64,000 bases of DNA, from positions 28,148,001 through 28,212,000 of the forward strand of contig OZ281496.1 of assembly GCA_965637545.1 (NCBI GenBank), given 5' to 3'. The DNA comes from Phallusia mammillata (lineage: Eukaryota). Below are positions 32,549 to 50,889 of this stretch, one piece after another (the stretch's first letter is position 1; every line of letters starts with the position of its first letter). The notes beneath the pieces were generated by a model. It was not told the DNA's origin. It did not search any database and worked only from the letters and a program-made list of their open reading frames with translations. The translations under genes and the position numbers were made by a program.

Positions 32549-33925
32549 TTAAAACGGTCCGATGTTTACGTTGCTGTTGGTGACATTGAAAACATTTGAG
32601 CTGATTTCTCTTGCTATTTGACTCCAGTTGATGAAGAAACTGCCCTTAACTTTTTCCCGGAGTTCGGTTTCATTTCGTTCCTCATAAATCGTGTAGTCAA
32701 CAGGTTGGACATCATCTTCAATTGGTTCTTCACTTGACTTTACCAAAAACTGTCGCGAAAGAGCGTCGTCATCTCTCAAGTTTTCTTGACTGATGACTGC
32801 ATTTTCGGGACGAAAATCAACAGCGTAGTCGGACACAAAAACTAGTCTCAGATTGTATGTTGGGCTGTAAGAGAAAGTGTTCATCGATATACACAATGTT
32901 TCATTTGTGTGCAGTTGTCTGACTCGGTCAAATGAAGAACCGTCGCTTTCAGTTAAATACCAAATCACTTCAAACGCACGATTACTGACAACTTTTCTAA
33001 ATCCCAAGGATGTTATTTGCCAGCCCAATCTATCACCCGCTCTTTCTTCTTCTTCAATAGCAATAGCCCTGTCAGAAAAGTGGAGTGCTTTGTACACTAC
33101 TTTGCCATCTGTACCAAGGGTGGCATTGGATTCAAATTGCCATGGCGACTTGTCGTTTTGGCGAACAAAGATAGAAACTTTGACTGGTCGCTCTGCGTCG
33201 AGAGAAAAGTAGGCGCTTCGACCCTCAACCTGAAAGTGCTTTTCAAATATTGTGCCGCTTGGCTCGCAGCATAAAATAGGAGCAATGCAAAAGAATTCGG
33301 AACCGTTCCCCCCAAATCTTTTTATGCTAGGTTTAAGACTTACAATCACCTCAACTTCTTTCTGTGTGGGACAAGCTGGAAAATCGACTTTGTAATCACC
33401 AAGGCTGATGTTTGCTCCCTTAAAACCAATCCGTTGATTTACGAATTGTGGAGAATTAGGCAGGTTTGGTTTTGGGTTCGTAGGTTCCACAACATCATTG
33501 CTGATTAGTGGTTCAGTATGTTTTTCTTTGGTGAAAAGAAGTCTCATAGATTCCTGAAGACAATCACTAAACCAAATTCCTTTCAGAAGTTTACAACGTA
33601 CCACTTTGCTTAGCAAAGAGAAAAGTAGCAACAACCCAACAACCAACAACAACAGTTCCACCTCTGTATAAGCTACGTTCCAAGTATGATCCAAAGGCGG
33701 CGGTATGTCATCAGTTATAGGCGCTGCAGTTGACCTTTCGAATGGATGAAGATTTTCCAGCGCTTCATTGCTTTCTTGAATCTTGCTCAAAATATATTCT
33801 CTATTTACAGTTGATCTTTTGAATTTATGAAGATTTTCCAGTATCGCTTTACTGTTTTCACGAATCTGTTCTAAAGTATGTTTTCCATTTGCAGTTACTA
33901 TCATTATTGGCTGAATCGAAACCAT
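32549..33925 (-). CDS. Array paralogue A: ectodomain + TM + ZU5(HFS) + UPA-like + RHIM-like end, 458 aa
   Basis: Uninterrupted ORF; TM VELLLLVVGLLLLFSLL; ZU5 signature IAPILCCEPSGTIFEKHF; HFS at 33074-33082; terminal VFNVTNSNVNIG. An AG just upstream of the ATG allows an additional 5' exon. Confidence 0.85.
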   Translation of the reverse strand: MVSIQPIMIVTANGKHTLEQIRENSKAILENLHKFKRSTVNREYILSKIQESNEALENLHPFERSTAAPITDDIPPPLDHTWNVAYTEVELLLLVVGLLLLFSLLSKVVRCKLLKGIWFSDCLQESMRLLFTKEKHTEPLISNDVVEPTNPKPNLPNSPQFVNQRIGFKGANISLGDYKVDFPACPTQKEVEVIVSLKPSIKRFGGNGSEFFCIAPILCCEPSGTIFEKHFQVEGRSAYFSLDAERPVKVSIFVRQNDKSPWQFESNATLGTDGKVVYKALHFSDRAIAIEEEERAGDRLGWQITSLGFRKVVSNRAFEVIWYLTESDGSSFDRVRQLHTNETLCISMNTFSYSPTYNLRLVFVSDYAVDFRPENAVISQENLRDDDALSRQFLVKSSEEPIEDDVQPVDYTIYEERNETELREKVKGSFFINWSQIAREISSNVFNVTNSNVNIGPF

Positions 33926-34129
33926 TCTGGTCTGGAATCACAAACACCTGATCGTTTTTCAGACTATAACTTCACTTTATTTGTCGTTGCTTATTTCATC
34001 AACTAGATAAAGCTTCTATTTATTGCTTCAAAAATCAAACACTTTCACTTGCAGGAGGTCTAAACCGTATATGGCATTTGCAGACGAAACGGGTTATTAT
34101 TTTTCCAAGTAAGTCATAAAACCCAGGTG

Positions 34130-34215
34130 GATCCCCACTCGGTCAATTCTAAAGGTTGCCTGGTAACCCAAGGCATACACCCACAGATTGTTATCCTTCA
34201 GTGACTTAGAAAGGA
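34130..34215. promoter_or_regulatory. Conserved upstream element with RFX X-box, paralogue A
   Basis: GTTGCCTGGTAAC at 34155-34167, about 230 bp upstream of the ATG; homologous blocks at 37060-37145 and 45795-45890. Confidence 0.5.
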
Positions 34216-34251
34216 AAAGTTTCCTGTGTTTGCTGTTGCCAATAACTACAC

Positions 34252-34718
34252 CAGTGGTTCCCAACCTTTTTTGTTACATTCCACCCTTTGCCCATTTTCT
34301 TACTATTCATTCCTCCCCATAAGATGAAAAACAAATATAACATAAAAAATTTTAGCAATTTAAAATATCAGTTTATTTCACATTACTACTCAATGCGAAA
34401 TTTGCTCTCGCTTGCGCTCTGAAAGTAGTTGTAATGGCAGCACAGTTCTTTTTATACTACTCGTCTCTTTTAAATACTGGTAGTTGACTAAAACTTAGGC
34501 TACAACTAAAATCTACACAAACAATGATATGCAACAAAGAATCTAGTTTCATTACACATACTATTTACTAACTGTCGACTGTTCAGTTTTTAAGCAACTA
34601 AGCATCAGCCAGATTGCCAAAAACAAAAATGTTGAAACAATTGACTTTGTTATGACAATAATTAATTAAATAATTTAAGTGCCTGAAAGAGGAATTCCTC
34701 CCCGGTTGGGAACCACTG
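34252..34718. mobile_element. 467-bp hAT MITE between paralogues A and B
   Basis: TIRs CAGTGGTTCCCAACC / GGTTGGGAACCACTG; perfect TSD aactacac at 34244-34251 and 34719-34726. Confidence 0.92.
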
Positions 34719-34789
34719 AACTACACAAACGTTCTGGTGAATAACTTATGACGCCAACACCCTTTAATTCAATACCCTTTAATCCAATA

Positions 34790-35530
34790 CCCTTTAATTA
34801 GTGCATTTATGTAAGTACTTATCTAACTGCTACATTTGTCGCCTTAACATAATCATTTTGAACAGAACGTTGTATGTTTTCCCTCCTGTTTCTCAATAGT
34901 GGAACAGCGGACCTTGGCTATTAATCGTTTTGGGTATAATTTCCATCTAAACATTTGCAGAAAAGTTGTCAATCCTGGAGTTATGGTTTCAGTTTGTTTG
35001 TTTGTTTTCTTGATCATTTCGTTTATATGTGCATTTTCTTCAAATCCGTTTGCAGCGTTTTTGTCTGACATAAAACCATCGTGCTTTGGTATCTTTACAT
35101 TAAGAGTATAGATTTGTTTTAATATGTTATAGTTTACCCGTAATTTGTTGCCGTTTTGGCTATTGACACATTGTGCAAACCAAAGTAATACCCTTTGTTG
35201 TTTATCGCAGTAAAATAAAGCATAGGAACACTGTACAAGGATGTGTTTGTTTTGTGGTAAATCGGCTCTTACAAACGACCCAATTAAATGCTTTCGTGGT
35301 TCTTTGTGGAGAAAAAACCAATATTTCTTTTTTTAAAGCAAGGTCTTTTTCTTTCTAACTTTTGCCATGGCTCAACGCGCATGTAGAAAACATGTCTTCT
35401 GTCACTTTTATTCGACTTTTTACAGTCACAAATATGTACAAAAATCAACTTTAACAGCAATAAAATATACACAAAACTGTGCAACACAAATTTAGACAAA
35501 ACTCGATATTCATCTAAAGTGAAATAGCGC
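34790..35530. repeat. 3'-flank module of the ZU5 array, copy beside paralogue B
   Basis: Colinear with 31690-32420 and 40010-40730. Confidence 0.85.
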
Positions 35531-35678
35531 AAAAAGTTATTTCATAAAGGAACATTTTCTTTTAAATTCCCAAAAGAAACAAAAACAGTTGTTTAATGGT
35601 CAATATGCCCTAAAAACTACTCATTTGCCACTGTACACAAATTCAAGGCGAGGATATAATTAAACCAGGCACTTCCAC

Positions 35679-36839
35679 TTAAACCGCCCTGATGTTTATG
35701 TTGCTGTTGCTGACATTGAAAACATTTGAACTGATTTCTCTTGCTATTAGACTCCAGTTGATGTAGAAACTACCCGTTATTTTTTCTCGGCTTTCGGTTT
35801 CATTTCGTTCCTCATAAATCTTGTAGTCAATAGGTTGGACATCATCTTCAATTGCTTCTTCGCCTGACTTGACCAGAAACTGTCTCGAAAGAACGTCGTC
35901 ATCTCTCAAGTTTTGTTGACTGATAAGGGCATTATCAGGACGAAAAACAACATCGTGGGCGGGAAGAAAAACCAATCTCAGATTGCATCTTGTGCTGTAG
36001 GAGAAAGTGTTCATCGATATGCACAATGTTTCATTTGTGTGCAGTTGCCTGATTCGTTCGAATGAAGGACCGTTGCTTTCAGCTAAATACCATGTCACCT
36101 CAAGCGCGCGTTTGCCAACAGCTTTCCCGAATCCAAACGACGTTATTTGCCTGCCCAATCTATTACCCGCTCTTTCTTCTTCTTCAATAGCAATAGCCCT
36201 GTCAGAAAAGTGGTGTGCTTTGTACAGTACTTTGCCATCTGTACCAAGGGTGGTATTGGACTCCAATTGCCATGGCGATTTGTCGTTTTTGCGACCAAAG
36301 ATGGAGACTTTGACTGGTCGCTCTGCGTCGAGAGAAAAGTAGGCGCTTCTGCCCTCTACGTGAAAGTTCTTTTCAAAGCTTGTGCCGCTTGGCTCGCAGC
36401 ACAAGATAGGAGCAATGCAAAAGAATTCGGAACCGTCTACACAAAAATTTCGTATACTTGGCTTCAAACTGATGCCCGCCTCAATTTCTTTCTGTTTAGA
36501 ACAAGCAGGAAAATCGACTTTGTATTCACCAAGGCTGATGTTCGCTCTCTTCGAACCTATCAACTCATTTACGTGTAGGGAAGAATTAGGCGGATTAGGC
36601 TTTAAGTTCAAAAGTGCAGGCAAGGCATTTTCAACGTTATCTTTGCTGATGAGTCGTTCAGTTTTTTTCCCTCTTGTAAAGTATTTGAAATATTGTAGAA
36701 CACCAACAAGATAACAATCAAAAACAGAAGTCCAAAAAACAGACAGTACGTTGGACCTCAGCAGTAGACTCTGACGCTCTTTCCACGACGTTTTCCTTCT
36801 TATGCCACAGCCAAATTCTTCTGGGCATTTCAATTTCAA
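35679..36839 (-). CDS. Array paralogue B (close to A): ZU5(HFS) + UPA-like intact, 5' end unresolved; possibly a pseudogene
   Basis: 386-codon open frame strongly similar to A from FT.....TE.LIS onward; HFS at 36204-36212; no in-frame ATG ahead of the ZU5 region and a TGA two codons upstream of the ORF start; terminal motif NINIR instead of NVNIG. Confidence 0.6.
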   Translation of the reverse strand: MKLKCPEEFGCGIRRKTSWKERQSLLLRSNVLSVFWTSVFDCYLVGVLQYFKYFTRGKKTERLISKDNVENALPALLNLKPNPPNSSLHVNELIGSKRANISLGEYKVDFPACSKQKEIEAGISLKPSIRNFCVDGSEFFCIAPILCCEPSGTSFEKNFHVEGRSAYFSLDAERPVKVSIFGRKNDKSPWQLESNTTLGTDGKVLYKAHHFSDRAIAIEEEERAGNRLGRQITSFGFGKAVGKRALEVTWYLAESNGPSFERIRQLHTNETLCISMNTFSYSTRCNLRLVFLPAHDVVFRPDNALISQQNLRDDDVLSRQFLVKSGEEAIEDDVQPIDYKIYEERNETESREKITGSFYINWSLIAREISSNVFNVSNSNINIRAV

Positions 36840-37967
36840 TTTTCAAGTATTTTCTTGTATACGCCCATGACACCCGTCGCTACATTCTGGCTAGTCGCTG
36901 CAAGTAAAGATGTTCAGAGAAAGTATCCATATCTAACGAAGTGTTCATCGCCGTCTAAAGTTCAGACAGAATATTTAAACAGTGCGTCGTTTCTGAACCC
37001 GTCGATAAAATTCGCAAATGGCAACAGGTGTGTTTCTTTCTCTAGCTATAACCCCTTGTTAATCCCCCCACGGTCATTTTTGATGGTTGCTTAGTAACAG
37101 CAAACTCCCACCCACACATCGTTTTCCCTCAATGACTTAGAAAAGCAAAGGTAAAAGCGCCAGACGTCATTGCTCATGGAAGAATGAAGGTAAAAGCTTC
37201 AGACTCCTTTGTTTGTCATTGCTACTGCGGCTTAAATTCCTGCTAAATATAACGTCAGTATTTGAAATGTGTCGACTGGTACAGATTTATGATTTCTGCC
37301 GAATTTTTTTATTTCTCTTCTACCGTGCACAATTACCTATCAGTATTTATCTTTATGAATTTTTTTCATGGCTTAACGCGCATGTAGAAAACATTGTATT
37401 TTGTTACTTTTATTCGACTTTTTAAAATTACAAATACGTACAAAAAATCAACTTTAAAAGCAATAAAATATACACAAAACTGTACACCTAAAGTGAAAAT
37501 AACAAATTTTTTCATTAGGGAGCATTAAATTTTTCTTCACAAAGACCACACATAAAAAAAACTTCGTCTAAAGGCTCTAAAAATTCTTTCCATTCACTTG
37601 TTTACATATATGCACATTCGAAACTGCGTCAATTTGTCGTAGTTAAATGTAACGTCTCGGGGCGACACTAAAGGCACCAAGCGTGTGTATTCACTGCTGC
37701 CTTTAAACAGTGGAAACTTTCCGCCAAATGCATCATTGGAAAATGTCCCGTTAAGGGCTGTATGTTGTGTTTTGGTCCCATATTTTGTCAATTGTTTTAA
37801 CTTGTGACATTGATATACAGTAACGAATCCTGATTTTTAAAAAAATGCCCAGAAAGTTTGCACATAGAAGCATTAAAGACGCGGAAAAGATTGTCACATT
37901 TGTGCATTGTCATATTCTTGGTTTTCACAACCAGGTTCTTCTTCTCCAGTCGTTTCGTTCCCGTGCA

Positions 37968-39442
37968 TCAACACATGTCTCTCACATGCAGGTGATTGAC
38001 GTTACCAGTAATTGTAAGGCTTGGTTCTGGCTCGCGTGCGGCCCATGAAATGTAGAATCGACCGTCAACCATCGACTCATTTCCTTCAGACAACATTTGA
38101 TCAATTTTGTAAGTGATAGTTGAAAGTTGGCGTTCGGGATTTTCTAATTCAATAAGAAAGTTTGTGGGAAGGGACTGAAGGAGACGTAGACGGTTTGATG
38201 GGATTCCAACTTCATTTCGATCTAATTTTGTTTCTTCTCCTTGAAGTTTTAAAACAAGATTTTGATCAAGTCGAATCCTTATCGTCTCATAGGATATTGC
38301 TTTATTTAAATTCTCACATTGCCCTCGAATTCGATTGTAAGTTGCCTCGTCCATTCGATCAATGAGAAACCAAGTAAGATCTCGTGCATGCTGACCGAGT
38401 CGCCGTGTGTAACCAAAAGTAGCCATTTCTCTGCACACATTAGCTGCGTTCGAAACGTTGACAATAACTTCGCGATCAGAAAAATGATCAGCCTTGAAAA
38501 CAACATTCCCTTTGTTGTCTAGTGATGACGTCGATTCCACTTGCCAAGACGATTTCTCGTCATTTCTGACGTAAACCTTCACAGGGACTGATTGAGATTC
38601 GTTCAACGCGAAGAAGCTGCTTTGTAATGTAACTGTAAAAGGTTTGAGGAACTGTATACCGGATGGTTCGCATCTAAGCCAGGGAGCAATTCGGAAGTCG
38701 TTTTTGCTCTGGACACTGTCGTATCGACCGACTGAGAATTTGAGAAACCTTTTGTGACTTACTGCTCCTTCAGGAAAGCAAAGTTTGTAGCATCCGACTT
38801 GAGCCGTCCCACCGTCGAATCCCAAGCACAATGTGTGTTTGCCTTCATGACTTGTGGAACCAAAGAGTTTTTGCTGATTTAAAATTTTTAGGACTAATAG
38901 TTTCTTCCGAGTTTTTGCACTGTCGTCCAATCGCAATGAGATAGAACTAGTGTTAGATGATTCTATGCGAAGAGCGAAAATGAGATATGCTATAACCAAA
39001 TGGATTACAACCAACAGAATTATCAGAACTAAAGTGATAATTGAGGTCAAACTCCAAAAAGGAATAAGCTCCTTATCTGATCCGCTGGTGGCAGTGGCGG
39101 CGATGGTGGTGGTTGGTTTGGGGGTGATTGCAGTGGTAGGGGTGGTGTTGGGAGTGTCGTACAATGTAGTTGAATTTATCTAAACACATACCGTCAGTAA
39201 GTTTTTCAATCAAACAATCTGTCACTTTTACATCATAAAAATTTCAAAAATTTCAAAATCTTGTTTTTGCGATGTTACAAATATTACCAGGTTTATTATG
39301 TTTTAGAAAACAGTAAAAAGATTACAGATCTGGACAATGTGTAGCCAGCAGCTTACTTACATTTATTCTACCTTGCAAAAACGAGTCAACAAAATCTTAC
39401 CGTAGTGCCCTCGAAAGTTCTCGTTGTAAACGCAAAGTCCAT
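37968..39442 (-). CDS. Array paralogue C: Thr/Pro-rich ectodomain + TM + ZU5(HFS) + UPA-like; C-terminal tail frameshifted
   Basis: Main exon 39179-37968 with acceptor gtgtttag; upstream exon 39442-39401 (MDFAFTTRTFEGTT, donor gtaaga, phase 0), which may extend further 5'. HFS at 38478-38486. Ends HLHVRDMC* because of a 2-nt insertion relative to paralogues D and G. Confidence 0.8.
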
Positions 39443-40009
39443 AATGTCAGGGGATTGTACAGAGACTGGTAAAGGCAATCCACAAACGTACAGTGTACTG
39501 GAACGAAATTTATCCTCATTGGTTTTAAAACTTCAAAGACCAAATAAAAACAAAACTTTATGATAGGCTTTATGTTTTGAAACTTAGCACAAAAAATAAC
39601 TCCACTAAAGTGTTACGGCTAGGCTGACATTAATGTATCCTACAATCATCATTTTAATCGTATAGGACATTACCTATCTGGTGCAATTCAAAACCTTCCT
39701 TCGCTTTTGTTTTGTTTTGAAATAACAGTGTATTATTGTCTAAATTATTAATGATGCAACTTGTGTTAGGTCGCTAAAGCGTAAAACAGTTTCTCATAAC
39801 TGTTCAAAAACCTACATTAAATAACTTTAGAAATTGTTTAAACCTGTTTCACTACTTGACCTCAAAAAAAGTTCTCTTGTGTTGTGCTACGAAAACAAAG
39901 TTTTGGGCAGCGACTGTCGTCCCTAAACGAATACCCTGGGAATAACCTGGCAAACTTTTTTGAGAGTAACAGTCGGCGCCATGGTTAATAGAAAAAGGTA
40001 TATATTAGC

Positions 40010-40730
40010 CGGCATTTATTTGATTACTTATCTGGCTCCCACATTTATTTGCGGAACATAATCGTTTTAAACATACCGTTGTATGTTTTTTTTAACTCTT
40101 TTGTATCCCATCAGAAACAACAGACCTTGACTAGTAATCTTTTTGGTTAAAATTTCTATTTCTATCCAATCATTTGTGGAAAAGTTGTCAATGCTGGAGT
40201 TAAGGTTTCAACGTGTTTTTTATTATTTCGTTTATACGTGTATTTTCTTCAAAACCGTTCACAGCGTGTTGCTTGGCTGAAAACCATCGTGTTTTGGTAT
40301 CTCTACATTAAGAGTATGCGTATGTTTTAATATGATGTATTTCTCCCGTAACTTGTTGCCTTTCTGGCGATTGGCACATTGTGCAAAGCAAAGTAATACC
40401 CTTTGTTGTTTATCGCAGTAAAATAAAGCATAGGAACACTACACAAAGATTGGCTTTGTAGTGAATCAGTTCTTACAAACGACACAACGAAATTAAATGC
40501 TTTTGTGGTTCTCTGTGGAGAACAAACCAATCTTTTTTTCAAACCTAAGTTTCTTTCTAACTTTTTGCCATGGGTCAACGCGCATGTAGAAAACATGTCT
40601 TTTGCTACTTTTATTCGACTTTTTTTACAATCACTAATACGCACAAAAACCAACTTTAATAGCACTAAAATATACACAAAACTGTACAACACAAATTCAA
40701 ACAAAATGCGCAATCACCTATAAAGTAAAA
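40010..40730. repeat. 3'-flank module of the ZU5 array, copy beside paralogue D
   Basis: Very similar to 31690-32420 over about 700 bp by eye. Confidence 0.85.
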
Positions 40731-41110
40731 AATATCACCCAATTTTTTTGTTTATTTTCACATGAGTCATACCATGAAATCAAATGTTGTCTAAAGGCTC
40801 TACAAATTCTTTCCATTTACATATTTACACAAAATTCGAAATTGTGTCAATTTGTCGTGGTTGAATGTAACGTCTCGGGGCGACCCTAAAGGCACCAGGC
40901 GTATTTGTTCATTGCTGCCTTTAAATATAGTGCCAAATTTCCGCCAAATGTATCATTGGAAAATGTCCCGTTAAGGGCTGTGTGGTGTTTTGGTCCTATA
41001 TTTTGTCAATTGTTTAAACTTGCAACGTTGATATACAATAACGAATCCTGATTAAAAAAAACTGCTCAGAAAGTTTCCACATAGAAGCATTAAAGACGCG
41101 AAAAAGATTG

Positions 41111-42660
41111 TCACATTTGTGCATTGTCATATCCTTGGAACCAGGTTGTTTCTGAACCAGGTTGTTCTTCTCCAGTCGCTTCGTTCACATGCACCAACAC
41201 ATCTCCAACATGCAAGTGATTGACGTTACCAGTGATTGTACGGTTTGGTTCTGGCTCGCGTGCGGCCCATGAGATGTAGAATCGACCGTCAACCATCGAC
41301 TCATTTCCTTCAGGTAGTCTTTGATCAATTTCGTAAGTAAAAGTTGAAAGTTGGCGTTCAGAATTTTCTAATTCGAGCAAAAATTTTGTGGGAAGGGACT
41401 GAAGGAGACGTAGACGGTTTGAAGAAATTTCAATCTCATTTCGATCTAATTTTGTTTCTTCTCCTTGAAGTTTTAAAACAAGATTTTGATCAAGTCGAAT
41501 CCTCAATGTCTCATAAGGGATTGCCTCGTCTGAATTCTCATTTTGCTCGCGAATTCGATTGTAGGTTGCCTCATCCATTCGATCAATAAGAAACCAGGTG
41601 AGATCTCGTGCATGTTGACCGAATGACCGCGTAAAACCAAACGTAGCCATTTCTCTGCCCACTATAGGTGCGTTTGAAACGTCAAAAACCTCTTCGCGAT
41701 CAGAAAAATGATCAGCCTTAAAAACTACATTCCCTTTGTTGTCTAGTGATGACGTCGATTCCAGTTGCCAAGGTGATTTCTCGTCATTTCTGACGTAAAC
41801 CTTTACAGGGACCGATTGAGATTCATTCAACGCAAAGAAACTGCTTTGCAGTGTAACTGTGAATGGTTTGAGGAACTTTATACCGGATGGTTCGCATCTA
41901 AGCCAGGGAGCAATTCGGAAGTCGTTTTTGCTCTGGTCGCTGTCGTATGGACCGACTGAGAATTTGAGAGAGGTTTTTGTGACTTACTGCTCCTTCAGGA
42001 AAGCATAGTTTGTAGCAGCCGACTTGAACCGTCCCACCGTCTAAGCCCAAACAGAGTGTCTGTTTGCCTTCGTGACTTGTTGTCACGTCGCCATGTGATA
42101 CTTCTATAAGTACGTTGTGATTTTATGCGCAAAACTGAATGGGAACGACTTAAAAACAAGACGATTACTAGAATTGAGAGACATAAAGCGATAAAGATCG
42201 AAGTCAAGATTGTAACAAGCTCATTATCTGGTTCGTAGGGGGCGACGTCGTTGGTGGTTGGATTGGAGGTGAGAGTGAATGTTGGGCTGGGGTTCGAGTT
42301 AATGCTGGTGGTAGGGGTGATGTTGAGGGTGTTGTACACTGTAGTTGAATTTATCTAAACATATACCTTTCGTAAGTTTCTAATATCACACAACCGTTCA
42401 ATTTTTACATTTTAAAAACATCAACTTGTTGTTATATTTTTGGTTTTCTCATCCTGTCCACGAACGGGAGTTTCGTAGGCTGAATATAACAGCCAGCGTT
42501 TTGCCATTCGCTACACTCATGAAACTCTAAAGACCGAGACAATGTGCAGCTAGCAGCTATAATTAGGCCTACATTTGTTCTAACCTGCAAAAACATTTTA
42601 ACAAAATCTTATCGTAGTTGCCTCGAAGGTTTTGTGGCTTGTTAATACAATTACATTCAT
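41111..42660 (-). pseudogene. Array paralogue D: full-length but disrupted
   Basis: Three ORF pieces in different frames (41995-42339 with TM, 41898-42086, 41111-41830). One frameshift lies just after the TM, a +1 lies in the A-run near 41975, and the donor of exon 42660-42613 is changed from GT to AT. HFS at 41702-41710 and NHLHVG retained. Confidence 0.85.
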
Positions 42661-43993
42661 AATGCCAAAGGATTGTATAGAGACTGGTAACGGTAATCCA
42701 CAAGCCTACGGTGTATACTAAAAAAGAAATCTATCTTGTTTTATCATCAAACTTTAAAGACCAACACTGTAAAATAAAATAAAACATAACTTTACATGAG
42801 GCTTTGTATTACATCTTAGTATGAAAAAATAACTCCAGTAATGTGTAACGGCTATAGGCTGGCTTGGATGTATCTTACAATCATCATTCAGTCGTATGGG
42901 ACATTTCCTATCTGGTGCAATTGAGAACCTTTCCTTCGCTTTTGTTTTGTTATGAAACAACATTGTATTAATAATAATACCACTTTTCTTGGGTCGCTAA
43001 AGCGAAGAAAAACATTTAATAACTTTAGAAATTGTTTAAACCGGTTTCACTATTAAACCTTAACGAAATTTGCTTGAAGACAAAGTTATGGGCAGCGACT
43101 GTCGTCCCTCAACGAATAACCTGCGAATTTCACAACAAAATTGTTTTGGAAATTACAGTAGGCGCCATTGTTACGTCGTTTTTGTCAACTGTTGTGAACA
43201 TAACTTTGTCCAGCAACACGTATAACAATTGTCCTGTGACGCAACAGTTGGTGTTTCATTCACTGTAAATCGGGATCCCACCCAGGGGGTGCAGACTGTT
43301 AACGTTTCTGTCAACTTTGTTTTATTAAAAAATGATTCTCTAAAACTTTTTTTGTTCACCCACTGTATTGCGCACGTACTAACCACAAACGTGGGACAAT
43401 AACCCGACAATTGTGTCCGAGTGTTTTCTTTATCACTAGTTTGACTCTCCCAAAAACTTTGGCAAGTTGAATGTTAACTATAAAAAAACCACAACAACAA
43501 GCACTGTGCGACAACTTGGCTGTGTTTATAGTAGGCCATCCAGTAATTGAACAGTGTCAGTGTTGATTTAAAAAAATCCGGACCCCAAAATCCATTGTTG
43601 CGAACAATGAAATGAAATTAAATGCTTTTGTGGTTCTCTCTGGAGAACAAACCAAACTTTTTTTCAAAGCAAAGTCTTTCTCTTTCTGACTTAGTTGCCA
43701 AGGCTCAACGCGCATGCAGAAAACATGTCTTTTGTTACTTTTATTAGTTTTAACAGTCACTAATACGCATAAAAATCAACTTTAAAAGCACTAAAATATA
43801 CACAAAACTGTACAACACAAATTCAAACAAAACGCGCAATCACCTAAAGTAAAAATATCACTCAAATTTTTATTAAGGAGCATTTAGCTTTCCTTCACAA
43901 AAAATAGTGAGTGAAAGTAACGTCCCGAGCGACCCTAAATGCCTCAGGCGCCATTGTTCACTGCTTTCAAATAGCGCCTCAGGCGCCATTGTT

Positions 43994-44777
43994 AATACCG
44001 GATGGTTCGCATCTAAGCCAGGGAGCAATTCGGAAGTCGTTTTTGCTTTTGTCGCTGTCGTATGGACCGACTGAGAATTTGAGAGAGGTTTTGTGACTTA
44101 CTGCTCCTTCAGGAAAGCATAGTTTGTAGCAGCCGACTTGAACCGTCCCACCGTCTAAGCCCAAACAGAGTGTCTGTCTGCCTTCGTGACTTGTTGTCAC
44201 GTCGCCATGTGATACTTCTATAAGTACGTTGTGATTTTATGCGCAAAACTGAATGGGAACGACTTAAAAACAAGACGATTACTAGAATTGAGAGACATAA
44301 AGCGATAAAGATCGAAGTCAAGATTGTAACAAGCTCATTATCTGGTTCGTAGGGGGCGACATCGTTGGTGGTTGGATTGGAGGTGAGAGTGAATGTTGGG
44401 CTGGGGTTCGAGTTAATGCTGGTGGTAGGGGTGATGTTGAGGGTGTTGTACACTGTAGTTGAATTTATCTGAACATATACCTTTCGTAAGTTTCTAATAT
44501 CACACAACCTTTCAATTTTTACATTTTAAAAACATCAACTTGTTGTTATATTTTTAGTTTTCTCATCCTGTCCACGAACGGGAGTTTCGTAGGCTGAATA
44601 TAACAGCCAGCGTTTTGCCATTCGCTACACTTATGAAACTCTAATTTAGACCGAGACAATGTGCAGCTAGCAGCTATAATTAGGCCTACATTTGTTCTAA
44701 CCTGCAAAAACGTTTTAACAAAATCTTACCGTAGTTGCCTCGAAGGTTTTGTGGCTTGTTAATACAATTACATTCAT
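43994..44777 (-). pseudogene. Array paralogue F: recent duplicate of D truncated inside ZU5; may still encode a 135-aa TM peptide
   Basis: 43995-45290 is near-identical to 41880-43150. Exon 44777-44730 with intact gtaaga donor plus exon 44468-44109 give ectodomain + TM + short tail. ZU5 homology stops at CEPSGI (about 43995). Confidence 0.85.
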
Positions 44778-46791
44778 AATGCCAAAGGATTGTATAGAGA
44801 CTGGTAACGGTAATCCACAAGCCTACGGTGTATACTAAAAAAGAAATCTATCTTGTTTTATCAAAACTTTAAAGACCAACACTGTAAAATAAAAAAAAAC
44901 ATAACTTTACCTAAGGCTTTGTATTACATCTTAGTATGAAAAATAACTCCAGTAATGTGTAACGGCTATAGGCTGACTTGGATGTATCTTACAATCATCA
45001 TAGTCGTATGGGACATTTCCTATCTGGTGCAATTGAGAACCTTTCCTTCGCTTTTGTTTTGTTTTGAAACAACATTTTATAAATAATAATACCACTTTTC
45101 TTGGGTCGCTAAAACGTAGAAAAACATTCAATAACTTTAGAAATTGTTTAAACCGGTTTCACTATAAAACCTCAACGAAATTTGCTTTACTTTGTGCTAC
45201 GAAAACCAAGTTATGGGCAGCGACTGTCGCCCCTCAACGAATACCCTGGGAATTTCACAAAAAACTTTTTTGGAAGTTACAGTCGGCGCCATGGTAAAAA
45301 AAAAAATTCAGTCGCCCATACCCTCCAAACCTAACCAATTAAGGTTTTATAGCGCGCCTAAACAAACGTAATAAAGCGCTGAAAAACGTTGCCCGCTTTT
45401 TCAGCCGAATCAATTGTTACAAACGACACAATACATTTAACTGCCTTTGTGGTTCTTCAGGTGTACAAGAACATGTTTCAGCGTTGTCGTTTTTTTAAAG
45501 TACTTTGTTTGTCACTTTTTATTTCATCAGCACGATAAAGCTTTTAACTTATAGCTTTTGGTTTGTCATAATTGAGTTCACTCGCATTAACAGCATAAGG
45601 TCCAGTTGAAAACATCCATATAGCAACGGGTATTTTAGGTTCGGCCTGACCGACCGAGATTTTTTGGCCTCATGGCCGAATATTTGGTTTCAGCCCGAAC
45701 CATTTTAGGCGGGTTCTGTGCATCACTAGTTTAAACCGTATATGACATTTGCACACGAAACAGCTTATTTGTTTCCAAGTACGTTATTAAACGGTAAATC
45801 CCCACACGGTCAATTCTAAACGTTGCCTGGCAACCTCAAGACAGACGCCCACACATGTTATCCCTAATTCAGTGACATTGCAACGAAAAATTTAACTGTA
45901 AACCAATCTGTGTTTGCCGTTCCCAATATCTCACGCTACAACGCGATGGAAAAAGCCGAACATTGCTGGCAATTTTTTAGATTAAAATTTTATATCTGCA
46001 AAACAATATTTTAAGACACCGCTTAAATGAATGAATGAAATACGTTTTGTACTTGCTGGTCTATTTACGTCTTTTTGTATTTACGATATTTACACATGAA
46101 CTACTAACGTACATAGACTGATATTAATCCACTCTGTGTTTGTTAAGTTAGGGTTTGTACCCTAGCTGATTCCGTCCTTTACGCATTGTTCCTCAGCCGA
46201 ACCCCAATTCATAAGAATTGGTGCTTTATTCAGATTTTTTATGAACAGTTTCTGGACCAAATCAAACCAAATCCGGTTTTACACAAAAATTAAACTCGTC
46301 AGTTAAAAGATTTGTTTCTTAAAGCACAATATAGGCCATACCCTAGTAAAATTGCTTACCTGTGCTAAAACAACGGTACTGAACACGCTATATACGCAGT
46401 TTCGTTGTAGTTGACCTTTAGTAGAAATTCTATAGTTTCAACACGTAATGGTACTTCCCTTATTTTTCTGCTGTGGTTGTAGGGTGGGTTGTTTTCAGTG
46501 AAGCAAATCACCGTAGCATTTGTCTACTGGAGTGAATGCCATTTCAAGAATGATGATGTGTATAACGAACCGGTTAAGAAGTGGGAAAAGTTAGGCTTTG
46601 TTGTAGCAGTGATGATATACGAACCGCTATTTTAACGAATACTCTTTTAAATCTTTATTAGATTAAAAGCAAAGTTTTATAGTGTTTTTATTTTTAAAAT
46701 AGATGCTTAAGATTTTTTGAGAAAGTCACATTTTTAAAAATTACTATGTTACTGCAGAACATTAAACAATATTTACAATTAGTATTCCCTG

Positions 46792-48135
46792 GTGTATCAC
46801 TGTACTGCTAATTCAACGCCATTTGAGATGGAGGACAAACAATTCGCCGACATGTTTAAGAGAACGAAAGCATCTTTGCCAGCTTCGACTACAGTTTCGG
46901 TTGTTCAGTCCGAAGGCGCTTCTTATGACGAAGGCCACTTTGTTTATCCAATAGCAATAGTTGCATTGGCCTGTATTGCCATAATTGTTGCATCGTTTGC
47001 ATTGTGGATATTTCGGATCAAACCGTCCAAACCTTTACCGAACTTATTTTCACCACGTTCGAGTTCGTACTACGGGGCAAAGTGTTATGGCTCAATGGTA
47101 TCGGAACGGGCAAGGGCCCTGAAATTTAGCCCTTTTAAGTCCAAATCGCCACAAAACTTCGAAAACAATAAACGCTCTACTGACAGAGTGACAGACCGAT
47201 GGTCTCGGAAACTCGATATCTCCTTAAACAGGAATGGAAGCGATTTTACACTCGGATGCTATTGTTTGTCATTTCCAAAAGGCTCAGTTGACAAAGATGT
47301 AGATTTGAGTTTTTCCGTCGAATCCTTTAACGATGACACAGAACACAAAAAGGAAATACGGATCGCTCCGCGTCTTAGATGCGAACCATGCGGCATAAAG
47401 TTCACCAAACCATTTACAGTTATACTGCAGAGTAGTTTCTTTGCGTTAAACAAATCTCAATCAGTCTCTGTAAAGGTTTACGTCAGAAATGACAAAAAAT
47501 CGCCTTGGCAACTTGAATCGACGTCATCACTAGACAACAAAGGGAAGGTAGTTTTCAAGGCTGATCATTTTTCTGATCGCGAAGTTATTGTCAGCGTTTC
47601 CAACGCACCTATTGTGGGCAGAGAAATGGCCACGTTTGGTTTTACGCGGTCATTCGGTCAACATGCACGTGATCTCACCTGGTTTCTCATTGATCGAAAC
47701 GACGAGGCAACCTACAATCGAATTCGCGGGCAATATGAGAATTCAGATGAAGCAATACCCTATGAGACAATGAGGATTAGGCTTGATCAAAATCTCGTTT
47801 TAAAACTTCAAGGAGAAGAAACAAAATTAGACCGAAATGAAGTTGAAATCTCATCAAACCGTCTACGTCTTCTTCAGGCCTTTCCCACAAAATTTCTGCT
47901 TCAATTAGAAAATTCTGAACGCCAACTTTCAACTGTCACTTACGAAATTGATCAAATGTTGTCTGAAGGAAATGAGTCGATGGTTGACGGTCGATTCTAC
48001 ATTTCTTGGACAACACCAGAACCTCCGGAACCAAACCTTACCATTACTGGTAACGTCAATCACTTGCACGTGGGAGATGTGTTGAGGCATGTGAACGAAA
48101 CGACTGAAGAAGGACCTGGTTCGGAGGAAAATTGA
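46792..48135 (+). CDS. Array paralogue G (inverted orientation): ectodomain + TM + ZU5(HFS) + UPA-like + RHIM-like, about 435-447 aa
   Basis: Uninterrupted ORF; first ATG at 46828, in-frame acceptor at 46781-46782 suggests an upstream exon; TM FVYPIAIVALACIAIIVASFALWIF; HFS at 47566-47574; LTITGNVNHLHVG at 48037-48075. Confidence 0.85.
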   Translation: MYHCTANSTPFEMEDKQFADMFKRTKASLPASTTVSVVQSEGASYDEGHFVYPIAIVALACIAIIVASFALWIFRIKPSKPLPNLFSPRSSSYYGAKCYGSMVSERARALKFSPFKSKSPQNFENNKRSTDRVTDRWSRKLDISLNRNGSDFTLGCYCLSFPKGSVDKDVDLSFSVESFNDDTEHKKEIRIAPRLRCEPCGIKFTKPFTVILQSSFFALNKSQSVSVKVYVRNDKKSPWQLESTSSLDNKGKVVFKADHFSDREVIVSVSNAPIVGREMATFGFTRSFGQHARDLTWFLIDRNDEATYNRIRGQYENSDEAIPYETMRIRLDQNLVLKLQGEETKLDRNEVEISSNRLRLLQAFPTKFLLQLENSERQLSTVTYEIDQMLSEGNESMVDGRFYISWTTPEPPEPNLTITGNVNHLHVGDVLRHVNETTEEGPGSEEN

Positions 48136-48725
48136 CCTTAAAAAGGGGAATACACAATTATGATAATATTGTGTTGTGTCGTTTGTACCAGTAAAAGCAC
48201 CGTCCATGTCAGTCGGGACTATCGATAACATACATATGTATATTTAGCCACGCATCCATAACGCGGAGTATAAGAAGTTATTTGGTATTCTATAGCCAAA
48301 CCAAAAGGCAAGTCAAAATTCAGTTATTGGGAATAGTCTTTGGAAATCGGCTTTTGGCTAACAGTTAATTGCTTATCGAGCAGGAATATAAAGCCATATG
48401 TGCTTATACTGAACTCTTATTTGTCAACATAATAATAATTGATTTCGAATTAAATGCTATGAGTGTCAAGAAACTAGACCGTTTGATTTGTCGACCGAAT
48501 CTCGCAGTTTGTTTCGCTTTTTGTCGCAAACTGCAGTCCCGTCGGTGATTACCCGGGGGATTCACCCAAAAGTTTTTTCCAGACATTTTTGTGTAGGCGT
48601 AAGGTTAATACATAGAACTTTGAATAAACGAAAAGAATAGGCTATGCCTTCTGATAACATTCCCATGATACCATTAAATGCTACAAAACACTGCAAAAGA
48701 AGTATTATAATACAAAATCATTACA

Positions 48726-48948
48726 ATGTAAAAACATATAGAGCCAATAAATGATAAGCTGCAGACAGTGCACACTGTTTCGACCTATAAGGTCTCATCA
48801 GTGCAGCTGGTGACGAGAGATCGGCCGCCTTGGCTAGTGTAGCCATTCAACGGCACTCCAGTTTGTTGGGAGCACAGGGTACAACCCCATGCATCACCTA
48901 GTCTGTGCGATGCCACAACTCGAAACAGTGTGCACTGTCTGCAGCTTA
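48726..48948 (-). mobile_element. 223-bp Penelope-like/retrozyme-type insertion with inverted terminal segment
   Basis: 14-bp direct repeat acaaaatcattaca at 48712-48725 and 48949-48962; perfect 29-bp inverted repeat at 48755-48783 and 48920-48948; contains a hammerhead ribozyme. Confidence 0.7.
48756..48808 (-). ncRNA. Type I hammerhead ribozyme
   Basis: Minus strand reads AGCTGCA-CTGATGA-GACC(TTATA)GGTC-GAA-ACAGT(GTGC)ACTGT-C-TGCAGCT: complete core, stems I, II and III all pair, GUC cleavage triplet. Confidence 0.9.
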
Positions 48949-49368
48949 ACAAAATCATTACATTTGGGAATATATCAACTATTTAATTTGCTAGAAGATA
49001 AACACAATGTTACCCTCGTTTTAGCATAATTTGTAGCACTTATCCTTAATATTTTGTGACGTTTTAAAGTTATAATAGGCATGTAAAAGACTCCATAAAA
49101 AACGAGAACAACAGACATTTTAGTCCGGCTAACAAAGTTTCGTCGCAAACCTTATTTAGCCGTTCGCTTCACCTCACTCAGTAAACACAAAAGCCTTGAT
49201 GGCGCAATATCGTCACGGGCCGATACGCAAACACTCCTTCGTATAACTTTTCAGCACACCTTGAGACGGGCGGTCGAAGTACAGCAGAGTCACAATCGTT
49301 AAAGAAACGTTCCTAATAAAGTAAAACAGTGCAGTTTTATGTTGTGTTTGAGGTAATCTTAAGCAAAG

Positions 49369-50889
49369 ATGGAACACAATCTTTCAGTTTTGGAAAGGTG
49401 TAAAAATTGCACTGCTAATGAAACCAATATAACTGCTGTTGTGCCGAATGGAAAGAATGATGTCAATTTTCCTTGGCTTCCTGTTGTTTATGTAGTCCCA
49501 GTGGTTACTATTATCGCATTTCTGTATCTCTTGCTACGGCGGTATTATACTAAGTTGCGTCGGGCTGTTCAGCAGCCTCTCGCCTTGACAGTTCAACCTT
49601 GCTATCAGTCAAACGCTAAAGAATCTTGCCTTAAAGCTCCAACTGCTTTGCAGAAGGTTCAAGAGCAAGGCGTCAAAGTGATTTTATCAGATATTTCAGA
49701 AACAAGAAATACTCTAAAACCGGTTTCGACCTCAACAGAAAACGCTAAAATCTTGAGTATAACTCTGGGGCCTAAAGGTGAAACTGTACGAAAGGGTTGT
49801 TACACTCTAATATTTCCTCCTGGTGCATTGGACAAAAATACTGATGTTGAAATCTCAGTCTTGGAAAATGAGGACAGCACTATATCAGGGCATTTCAGAA
49901 TCGCCCCTGTGTTACGATGCGAACCTAGCGGATTATCGTTCAAAAAACCGTTTCAAGTTGTTGTTGAAAGCAGGTTTTTCGCCTGGACCTCAGACAAACT
50001 TGTTGCAGCTAAAGTTTCGGTGCGGGAAAACGCATTTTTGCCTTGGGAAGACGAGTCAACTACTTTGCTAGGTCATGACGGAAAGGCTGCGTTTTCGGCT
50101 ACGCATTTTTCAGGTCGATCTATCGACTGCAACCTAGAGGACCGGAGTGATGTAGGAAGGGATATGTGCACTTTTGGATATTTGTCTGTTTTGGATCATC
50201 AAGCCACGGAGCTTACTTGGTACGTTTTAGACAAACAAAGTAATGATGACTATGAACGTATCTGTAAGCGTCACATCAAGGACAGTGATGCAGTTTCATA
50301 CCAAGTTATGAAGGTTAACTTAGATTACAGGCTGAAATTAACGTTGACCTCAAACAGCAGTGTAAATTTGGAGCCAAAAGTGGAATTTATTGAAAGCTGG
50401 GATCTTTGCAGTCTAAACACAAGATCAAAGAAATTTTTGCTAGAACTGGGTGATGAATATGTTAAAAGGTCAACAGTGAAATACAATGTTAAACACCAAA
50501 CAATAAGAATGGACATGCTTGAGTACGGCGACACGGGCAATACGATTGCGCAAGGCCGATTCTTTGTTCAGTGGGGTTTGGCTCGTAGCGAATCTCAAAC
50601 TAGCCTTCAATTCGTCGGAGGAACACAAAATCTAAGTCTGGGGAACAACGGCACAACTAGTTTCAGTTCGTTTTCGGAAAGCTCCCAAAACTCACAAAGC
50701 AATTTAAGTTTACCATTGGCCGAGCAGTCAGTGCAAAACGAGGACATTCGTGGTTTACCAGCTGCGCGGGCTCAACTTCCTTCCACACCAAACGACAGTC
50801 GCGCATCGACCTTAAACAGGCCTGCGATCCAATCTCCAATGGCCTTTAACCAATCAGCAAACGATTTGGTGTTTTTTAAGGTTGTTTGA
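49369..50889 (+). CDS. Array paralogue H (most divergent): N-glycosylated ectodomain + TM + ZU5(HFS) + UPA-like + RHIM-like + Ser/Gln/Pro tail, 506 aa
   Basis: ATG-to-stop ORF; sequons NLS, NCT, NET, NIT before TM WLPVVYVVPVVTIIAFLYLLL; ZU5 LGPKG...LIFPPGAL...IAPVLRCEPSGLSFKKPF; THFS at 50101-50112; LQFVGGTQNLSLGNN at 50605-50649. Confidence 0.88.
   Translation: MEHNLSVLERCKNCTANETNITAVVPNGKNDVNFPWLPVVYVVPVVTIIAFLYLLLRRYYTKLRRAVQQPLALTVQPCYQSNAKESCLKAPTALQKVQEQGVKVILSDISETRNTLKPVSTSTENAKILSITLGPKGETVRKGCYTLIFPPGALDKNTDVEISVLENEDSTISGHFRIAPVLRCEPSGLSFKKPFQVVVESRFFAWTSDKLVAAKVSVRENAFLPWEDESTTLLGHDGKAAFSATHFSGRSIDCNLEDRSDVGRDMCTFGYLSVLDHQATELTWYVLDKQSNDDYERICKRHIKDSDAVSYQVMKVNLDYRLKLTLTSNSSVNLEPKVEFIESWDLCSLNTRSKKFLLELGDEYVKRSTVKYNVKHQTIRMDMLEYGDTGNTIAQGRFFVQWGLARSESQTSLQFVGGTQNLSLGNNGTTSFSSFSESSQNSQSNLSLPLAEQSVQNEDIRGLPAARAQLPSTPNDSRASTLNRPAIQSPMAFNQSANDLVFFKVV

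Follow-up and report, generated by a model that had tools for sequence, protein, structure and literature searches.

A tandem array of ZU5-UPA genes

This work concerns a 64,000-nucleotide window of the Phallusia mammillata genome (assembly GCA_965637545.1, contig OZ281496.1, positions 28,148,001-28,212,000 of the forward strand) and a family of tandemly duplicated genes within it, whose products are predicted to carry a ZU5-UPA domain behind a membrane anchor. With the paralogues as queries, tblastn identifies six copies that bear a His-Phe-Ser (HFS) motif, designated A, B, C, D, G and H, plus one truncated copy (Table 1). An earlier note on this DNA had reported HFS in these six copies, and translation of the nine bases concerned returns His-Phe-Ser in 6/6, in the contexts listed. 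Its lettering from A to H also implied two motif-less copies; the truncated copy accounts for one, whereas no second was found in the window at expectation values (E) up to 5. The position of the motif within the domain and its conservation across distant relatives lead us to propose that the intact members cut themselves between Phe and Ser.

Table 1 Coordinates of the array and its features, numbered from the first base of the window
Feature	Positions	Strand	Description
Copy A	32549..33925	-	intact 458-residue open reading frame with ATG; transmembrane residues 91-109; ZU5-UPA; tail end NVNIGPF
Copy B	35679..36839	-	no in-frame ATG; weak hydrophobic segment only; tail motif Gly-to-Arg; HFS intact
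Copy C	37968..39442	-	main exon 37968-39179 plus inferred 14-codon first exon 39401-39442; tail motif Gly-to-Arg
Copy D	41111..42660	-	pseudogene; still a single open frame from mid-ZU5 to the end
Truncated copy	43994..44777	-	inferred first exon 44730-44777; N-terminus, transmembrane segment and first half of ZU5
Copy G	46828..48135	+	intact; 435 residues from first ATG (46828)
Copy H	49369..50889	+	intact 506-residue open reading frame; four N-x-S/T sequons, then transmembrane residues 37-55 (49477-49533), then Lys/Arg cluster
HFS, copy A	33074-33082	-	context LHFSD
HFS, copy B	36204-36212	-	context HHFSD
HFS, copy C	38478-38486	-	context DHFSD
HFS, copy D	41702-41710	-	context DHFSD
HFS, copy G	47566-47574	+	context DHFSD
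HFS, copy H	50104-50112	+	context THFSG
ZU5 half of H	49756..50133	+	model residues 1-126; includes the post-motif strand that completes the ZU5 sandwich
UPA half of H	50110..50571	+	model residues 119-272; starts at Ser of HFS
Tail motif of H	50602..50643	+	just after UPA; pattern h-x-h-G ... h-x-h-G

The copies fall into three subfamilies. A and B are 71% identical from residue 106 of A onward, and C, D and G share 74-84% identity among themselves; between subfamilies, whole-domain identity is 27-35% (approximately 31% for A against G), and H stands at the same 27-35% from all others.

Several copies depart from a simple intact gene. The long open reading frame of copy C lacks an ATG, which an inferred first exon supplies together with a GT donor and an in-frame TTTAG acceptor; the splicing of this putative exon is deduced from the fact that C, D and the truncated copy all conserve it. 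Copy D carries at least two frameshifts in its N-terminal and early ZU5 part, and its inferred splice donor has changed from GT to AT, while copy B is probably truncated or decaying. The tblastn match to the truncated copy spans 43994-44468 on the minus strand, and similarity stops after CEPSGI at 43994, before the HFS region.

The mini-exon itself, of 14-16 codons with its ATG, is conserved at 39401-39442 (C), 42613-42660 (D) and 44730-44777 (truncated copy), in each case on the minus strand and approximately 220-260 bases upstream of the long open reading frame with its in-frame TTTAG acceptor. Its donor reads GT in C and the truncated copy and AT in D. Alignment extends over most of the roughly 900 bases upstream of the three and is closest between D and the truncated copy.

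HFS lies at the junction of a ZU5-UPA supramodule

We modelled residues 130-428 of H with AlphaFold2. The six-sequence alignment of the close members comprises five window copies and P0001, the only sequence that word-based protein searches returned for H (the G domain query returned nothing, and these searches were set aside). Searching a profile from six sequences against 1.84 billion protein representatives gave 63 hits, from which a 57-row alignment was built. A model from the six close sequences alone was unusable, with a predicted local distance difference test score (pLDDT) of 41, and was replaced by one from the 57-row alignment, which reached a pLDDT of 92.3 and a predicted template modelling score of 0.83.

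Structure searches with this model converge on known ZU5-UPA modules. In the PDB, Foldseek matched the ankyrin-B ZU5-ZU5-UPA-death domain structure (E 4e-11), the UNC5b cytoplasmic domain (E 2e-10, template modelling (TM) score 0.58) and the FIIND of rat NLRP1 (E 4e-6), and VIA-align placed 4d8o (ankyrin-B, Z 17.1), 3g5b (UNC5b, Z 16.4 over model residues 1-273), 7jn7_B (CARD8, Z 13.1) and 7crw_A (rat NLRP1 FIIND, Z 13.0) upon it. A shape search of the Atlas likewise returned UNC5 (TM 0.64) and, third by shape, the UNC5CL cluster (TM 0.62 over 249 residues), both spanning model residues 1-270, and a search of the Atlas with language-model features ranked UNC5 and UNC5CL first, with the UNC5CL cluster second-nearest at 0.87, a result that serves as a lead only. 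Judged by its model, the domain of H is a ZU5-UPA supramodule.

Sequence profiles reach less far. Against the Pfam ZU5 model (PF00791, cutoff 21), H passes with 24.1 bits, G (18.6) and C (15.6) remain below, and A and B give no match; a Pfam scan of the full proteins returns no UPA, FIIND, Death, CARD or RHIM match, and the closest relatives behave likewise. The six-sequence profile yielded chance-level hits only when compared with PDB sequences and was discarded, and the 57-row family profile finds ankyrin ZU5 chains at 1e-21 from an alignment that itself includes ankyrin-like rows.

Within the model, HFS corresponds to residues 117-119, in the turn between strands 110-117 and 120-126. The ZU5-only chains 3f59, 3kbu and 3ud2 align from model residue 1 to residues 126-130 (Z 12.5-12.7, root-mean-square deviation 2.1-2.7), and 7crv_D, a 146-residue rat NLRP1 FIIND chain that contains the UPA half only, aligns from the motif Ser onward (model residues 119-272, Z 11.5). 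Residues 181-444 of CARD8 align to model residues 1-273, which puts Ser297, at which cleavage of CARD8 has been demonstrated by experiment (PMC3210808), within approximately 2 residues of Ser119. The model and the structure matches thus agree with the earlier placement of the motif at the end of ZU5 and locate it at the ZU5/UPA boundary, the point of self-cleavage in PIDD1, UNC5CL, NLRP1 and CARD8.

Conservation within the array and in distant relatives

Invariance of HFS within the array carries little weight on its own. In the six-sequence alignment, 43 of approximately 292 columns (about 15%) are invariant, so that approximately one invariant triplet is expected by chance, against two seen (CEP and HFS), and the six reading frames of the window contain 34 instances of the bare HFS triplet. 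We therefore rejected in-array invariance as significant in itself; the weight of the motif comes from its position at the ZU5/UPA junction and its conservation across distant relatives. At the codon level, the subfamilies differ by synonymous changes, His being encoded by CAC or CAT and Ser by TCT or TCA. The earlier note had described the surrounding residues as widely different, which holds for the domain as a whole, given the divergence between subfamilies, but not for the immediate flanks, where A-x-H-F-S-x-R does not vary among P0001 and the five window copies in the alignment.

Across the 57-row alignment, the motif behaves in sequence like a catalytic site. Phe118 is retained in 55/57 rows and is the lowest-entropy column of all, His117 is retained in 47/57, and position 119 is occupied by Ser (42), Cys (9), Thr (5) or Gly (1), so that 56/57 rows have Ser, Cys or Thr. 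These three residues are able to start an N-to-O or N-to-S acyl shift (PMC3210808), and the pattern therefore suggests a nucleophile rather than a packing residue. As a control, we masked seven columns around the motif and repeated the profile search at the same database size: 43/63 hits stay at E<=1e-3, and 20 of the 26 that are aligned across the site read HF[S/C/T]. Some relatives possess degenerate sites (SLS, GFS, RFG), which indicates that loss of the motif does occur.

A full-length homologue with 46% identity keeps the motif, as do intronless relatives in other samples and in ascidians. In the profile search, the nearest relatives with a name come from the ascidian Clavelina lepadiformis and are uncharacterised; among those further away are a NACHT and ZU5 protein of Styela clava, an ankyrin-like protein of amphioxus that has both ZU5 and Death domains, and proteins that combine ZU5 with BTB and Kelch or with SH2. 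Within subfamilies, the ratio of nonsynonymous to synonymous divergence (dN/dS) is 0.16-0.36, while dS is saturated between them, from which it follows that the three subfamilies are old and that their shared HFS has been maintained by selection.

In three of the distant relatives (P0013, P0019 and P0020), a ZU5 domain with an HFS-type site accompanies unusual partner domains, with GFS in the NACHT protein of Styela clava, HFC in the BTB, BACK and Kelch protein and HFS in the SH2 protein. P0007 and P0008 are the Clavelina lepadiformis proteins CAK8685875.1 and CAK8685874.1; P0008 reads SLS in place of HFS, a natural loss of the motif. Because their accessions are consecutive and lie on one contig, the family may be tandemly arranged in Clavelina lepadiformis too.

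Membrane topology, predicted fragments and expression

Hydropathy identifies one strongly hydrophobic 19-residue segment near the N-terminus of A, C, G, H and P0001-P0006. It is followed by 3-7 Lys or Arg residues in A, G, H and P0001-P0006 and by 2 in C, an arrangement predicted to place the ZU5-UPA module on the cytosolic side. N-x-S/T sequons precede the transmembrane segment in most of these proteins, with none in A and P0006 and four in H, and the N-terminus predicted to lie outside the cell is short and probably glycosylated.

On this topology, cleavage at the motif would leave a membrane-bound N-fragment and a soluble C-fragment composed of UPA plus tail. The predicted C-fragments are 187 residues and 21.5 kDa for G, matching the approximately 21 kDa given earlier, 259 residues and 29.1 kDa for H, and 20.3 kDa for A. 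The earlier proposal that each protein is cut in this way is too broad, since D is frameshifted with an AT donor and B has neither a start codon nor a clear anchor; at most it extends to A, C, G and H, the four for which the membrane tether it assumed is supported by the topology signals.

Contigs from a sequencing run that is probably RNA cover 46761-48126, the open reading frame of G, with no mismatches, and none lies on its flanks. These contigs begin three bases after the CAG at 46755-46757, which could be a cis- or trans-splice acceptor.

A short conserved tail follows the UPA half

Immediately after the last UPA strand, all close members carry a short alternating-hydrophobic motif that ends in Gly; equivalents of the H motif are found in the other copies and in P0001-P0004. 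The tails read VNIG (A, P0001), LHVG (D, G) and LSLG (H), and IIFG, IYVG or ITCG at an earlier position in P0002-P0004. The final Gly is present in A, D, G, H and P0001 and is replaced by Arg in B (NINIR, 35682-35702) and C (HLHVR, 37974-37994). Overall, the tails are 20-100 residues long and contain no Pfam domain, with no Death or CARD match in any window copy or in P0001-P0008. Model pLDDT drops from 70 to 50 beyond residue 270.

The earlier note had described the C-fragment as UPA plus a RHIM-like part. The core tetrad of a RHIM (RIP homotypic interaction motif) is (I/V)-Q-(I/V/L)-G, and no copy has Gln in its tail motif. Searched alone against Pfam at E<=10, the tails give no RHIM match, and a tail profile (A4) compared with PDB sequences at E<=10 recovers no RHIM chain and one unrelated hit, both weak tests for so short a motif. 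The description thus gains no support from Pfam or from solved structures, and we use "RHIM-like" to denote a resemblance in residue pattern only. Among the papers covered by a literature search, none joins RHIM and ZU5 in one protein.

Far downstream of UPA, a second linear motif, (D/E)-I-R-G-(L/R)-P-A-(A/S)-R, is conserved in H (tail, 50730-50886), P0001 (residues 478-526) and the tail of Clavelina P0006, and might serve for docking. A C-terminal N-D-x-V-F-F is likewise common to H and P0001.

Repeat between copies G and H

A very high-copy repeat occupies 48738-48954, between G and H, with a summed contig depth of approximately 1.4 million in a DNA run against approximately 370 on its flanks; it is also covered in probable RNA runs. 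Within it, a 501-base search finds a type I hammerhead match at 48758-48807 on the minus strand that is below threshold (22.8 bits against a gathering score of 34, E 0.004). An Rfam scan of 30000-52000 gave no match at gathering score.

Proposed mechanism and alternative explanations

The computation establishes four things: the fold, the junction position of the motif, its conservation pattern and the membrane topology signals. We favour the reading, at a probability of roughly 0.62, that the array encodes single-pass membrane proteins with a cytosolic ZU5-UPA module and a short tail, which cut themselves between Phe and Ser and whose C-fragment is freed when the N-fragment is lost. Its parts differ in strength. 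Self-cleavage at F-Ser in the intact copies A, C, G and H is a prediction in which we place considerable confidence, while release of the C-fragment and signalling by the tail, proposed by analogy, have even odds at best.

In the proposed mechanism, folding of ZU5 would bury the Phe of HFS and strain the Phe-Ser bond. The Ser hydroxyl, assisted by His, would then attack this bond, producing an N-to-O acyl shift followed by hydrolysis of the ester, so that the chain would be cut between Phe and Ser without a protease, as in PIDD1, UNC5CL, NLRP1 and CARD8. A buried Phe and a Ser nucleophile have been described for cleavage at both HF/S and SF/S (PMC3210808). Cleavage would probably be constitutive and occur soon after folding, and the two pieces would remain bound non-covalently, since the strand with which the C-fragment begins continues to complete the sheet of ZU5. 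Only upon removal or unfolding of the membrane-bound N-fragment would the C-fragment, made up of UPA and tail and approximately 20-29 kDa in size, be freed. NLRP1B provides a precedent for this step, as release of its UPA fragment needs loss of the N-fragment (PMC11408587). Self-association driven by UPA could afterwards bring tail motifs close together and so serve downstream signalling.

Several points weigh against this reading. Only H passes the Pfam ZU5 cutoff, and no copy, scanned as a full protein, matches the Pfam models for UPA or FIIND, UPA-FIIND included. Of the six copies counted as sharing HFS, B, D and perhaps also C are damaged or of doubtful status, for which reason the presence of the motif in these copies partly reflects recent duplication. 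The equivalence of residues to the NLRP1 and CARD8 sites was read from the ends of aligned ranges; the relatives were collected with a profile that contains the motif, a bias that the masked control lessens and does not remove; and no contig of the probable RNA run covers H. The earlier suggestion that the C-fragment is released on activation is drawn from analogy.

The best-surviving alternative, which we nevertheless consider unlikely, is that self-cleavage at F-Ser is a maturation step only, after which the fragments never part and signal as a complex from the membrane, as UNC5CL and GAIN-domain receptors are reported to do. The cleaved fragments of CARD8 and PIDD do remain associated (PMC3210808), strand 120-126 of the model belongs to the ZU5 sandwich even though it follows the motif, the ZU5-only chains aligning through residues 126-130, and the architecture of the array proteins is nearest to UNC5CL. 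However, NLRP1 and CARD8, which use the same module, release UPA-CARD once the N-fragment is lost (PMC11408587), and a short tail offers no obvious way to recruit partners unless it becomes concentrated or exposed.

Alternatively, HFS could be kept for folding or partner binding with no cleavage at all, which we regard as improbable. Changing the residue before Phe has only a small effect in Nup98 and CARD8 (PMC3210808), so sequence alone is no proof of activity; efficient cleavage of CARD8 also needs upstream His and Glu residues, and some relatives have degenerate sites. Against this, HFS is absent from ZU5 domains that do not cleave: at the aligned site ankyrin reads NVS, from which it follows that the ZU5 fold does not require HFS, and UNC5b has Leu at the position of the CARD8 Phe (PMC3210808). 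The restriction of position 119 to Ser, Cys or Thr likewise fits a nucleophile and not a packing residue.

That the cluster is decaying and non-functional, its shared HFS reflecting common descent only, is scarcely credible: D has frameshifts, B is without a start codon, a further copy is truncated, Arg replaces the tail Gly in B and C, and H has no contigs in the probable RNA run, but dN/dS is low within subfamilies, HFS is shared across subfamilies with saturated dS, A, G and H keep intact open reading frames, G is covered by probable RNA contigs, and the 46%-identical homologue and the intronless relatives, those in ascidians included, retain the motif.

Returning to the favoured reading of self-cleavage followed by release, a bolder extension is that these proteins act as membrane-anchored sensors that cut first and release later, by the logic of NLRP1 and CARD8, with a released UPA that bears, in place of a death-fold domain, a short motif of the amyloid type. 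They would be triggered when the exposed N-fragment is lost or degraded, for instance by pathogen action at the membrane, and tunicates would have coupled the self-cleaving ZU5-UPA switch to another kind of signalling polymer. We offer this extension as speculation that is more probably wrong than right.

Comparison with known self-cleaving proteins

By architecture, the array proteins are closest to UNC5CL, which has an N-terminal membrane anchor, a cytosolic ZU5-UPA module and no large ectodomain in a length of approximately 518 residues, and which retains the transmembrane helix (PMC10084454) and HFS autoproteolysis (PMC10084454, PMC7883297). UNC5CL ends in a death domain, however, while the array proteins end in their short tail. 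Word-based searches, which returned P0001 or nothing, give no sequence-level link to UNC5CL, and orthology is unlikely.

By logic, the closest systems are the FIIND proteins. As proposed for the array, the ZU5-UPA module of NLRP1 and CARD8 is cut at x-F-Ser at the subdomain junction, and the C-fragment consists of UPA plus an effector (PMC3210808). They differ in that the motif is SF-Ser rather than HF-Ser, the effector is a CARD and the proteins are cytosolic, not membrane-anchored. PIDD1 shares HF-Ser cleavage directly after ZU5, with a Ser nucleophile and a buried Phe (PMC3210808, PMC7883297), but it has leucine-rich repeats, two ZU5 domains with two cleavage sites and a death domain, and is not a membrane protein.

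The best structural matches are UNC5A-D and the ankyrin ZU5-UPA-death domain proteins (Z 16-17; TM 0.58-0.64), which are not autoproteolytic and carry death domains. GAIN domains are cleaved at HL-Thr, between L and T. The GAIN domain of CD97 matches model residues 1-128 weakly (Z 9.1), and its protein context and motif differ from those of the array. A related autoproteolytic fold has been proposed for GAIN and the Nup98 autoproteolytic domain (Liao et al. 2014, as cited in PMC10084454).

Implications

The PIDDosome and the inflammasomes of NLRP1 and CARD8 are switched by self-cleavage of ZU5-UPA modules at x-F-Ser. To our knowledge, the released part carries a death-fold domain in every studied case. 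What sets the P. mammillata array apart is that the self-cutting site and the membrane anchor are kept and the death-fold domain is replaced by a short conserved tail, in a family that is lineage-restricted, tandemly duplicated and under purifying selection, with its nearest named relatives in ascidians. Should the tail form RHIM-type assemblies, the family would link two mechanisms of innate immunity that have so far been described separately. If cleavage and release both occur, ZU5-UPA would be a general-purpose release device that is not tied to death-fold signalling, and the function of the UPA half by itself could be studied in a simple system.

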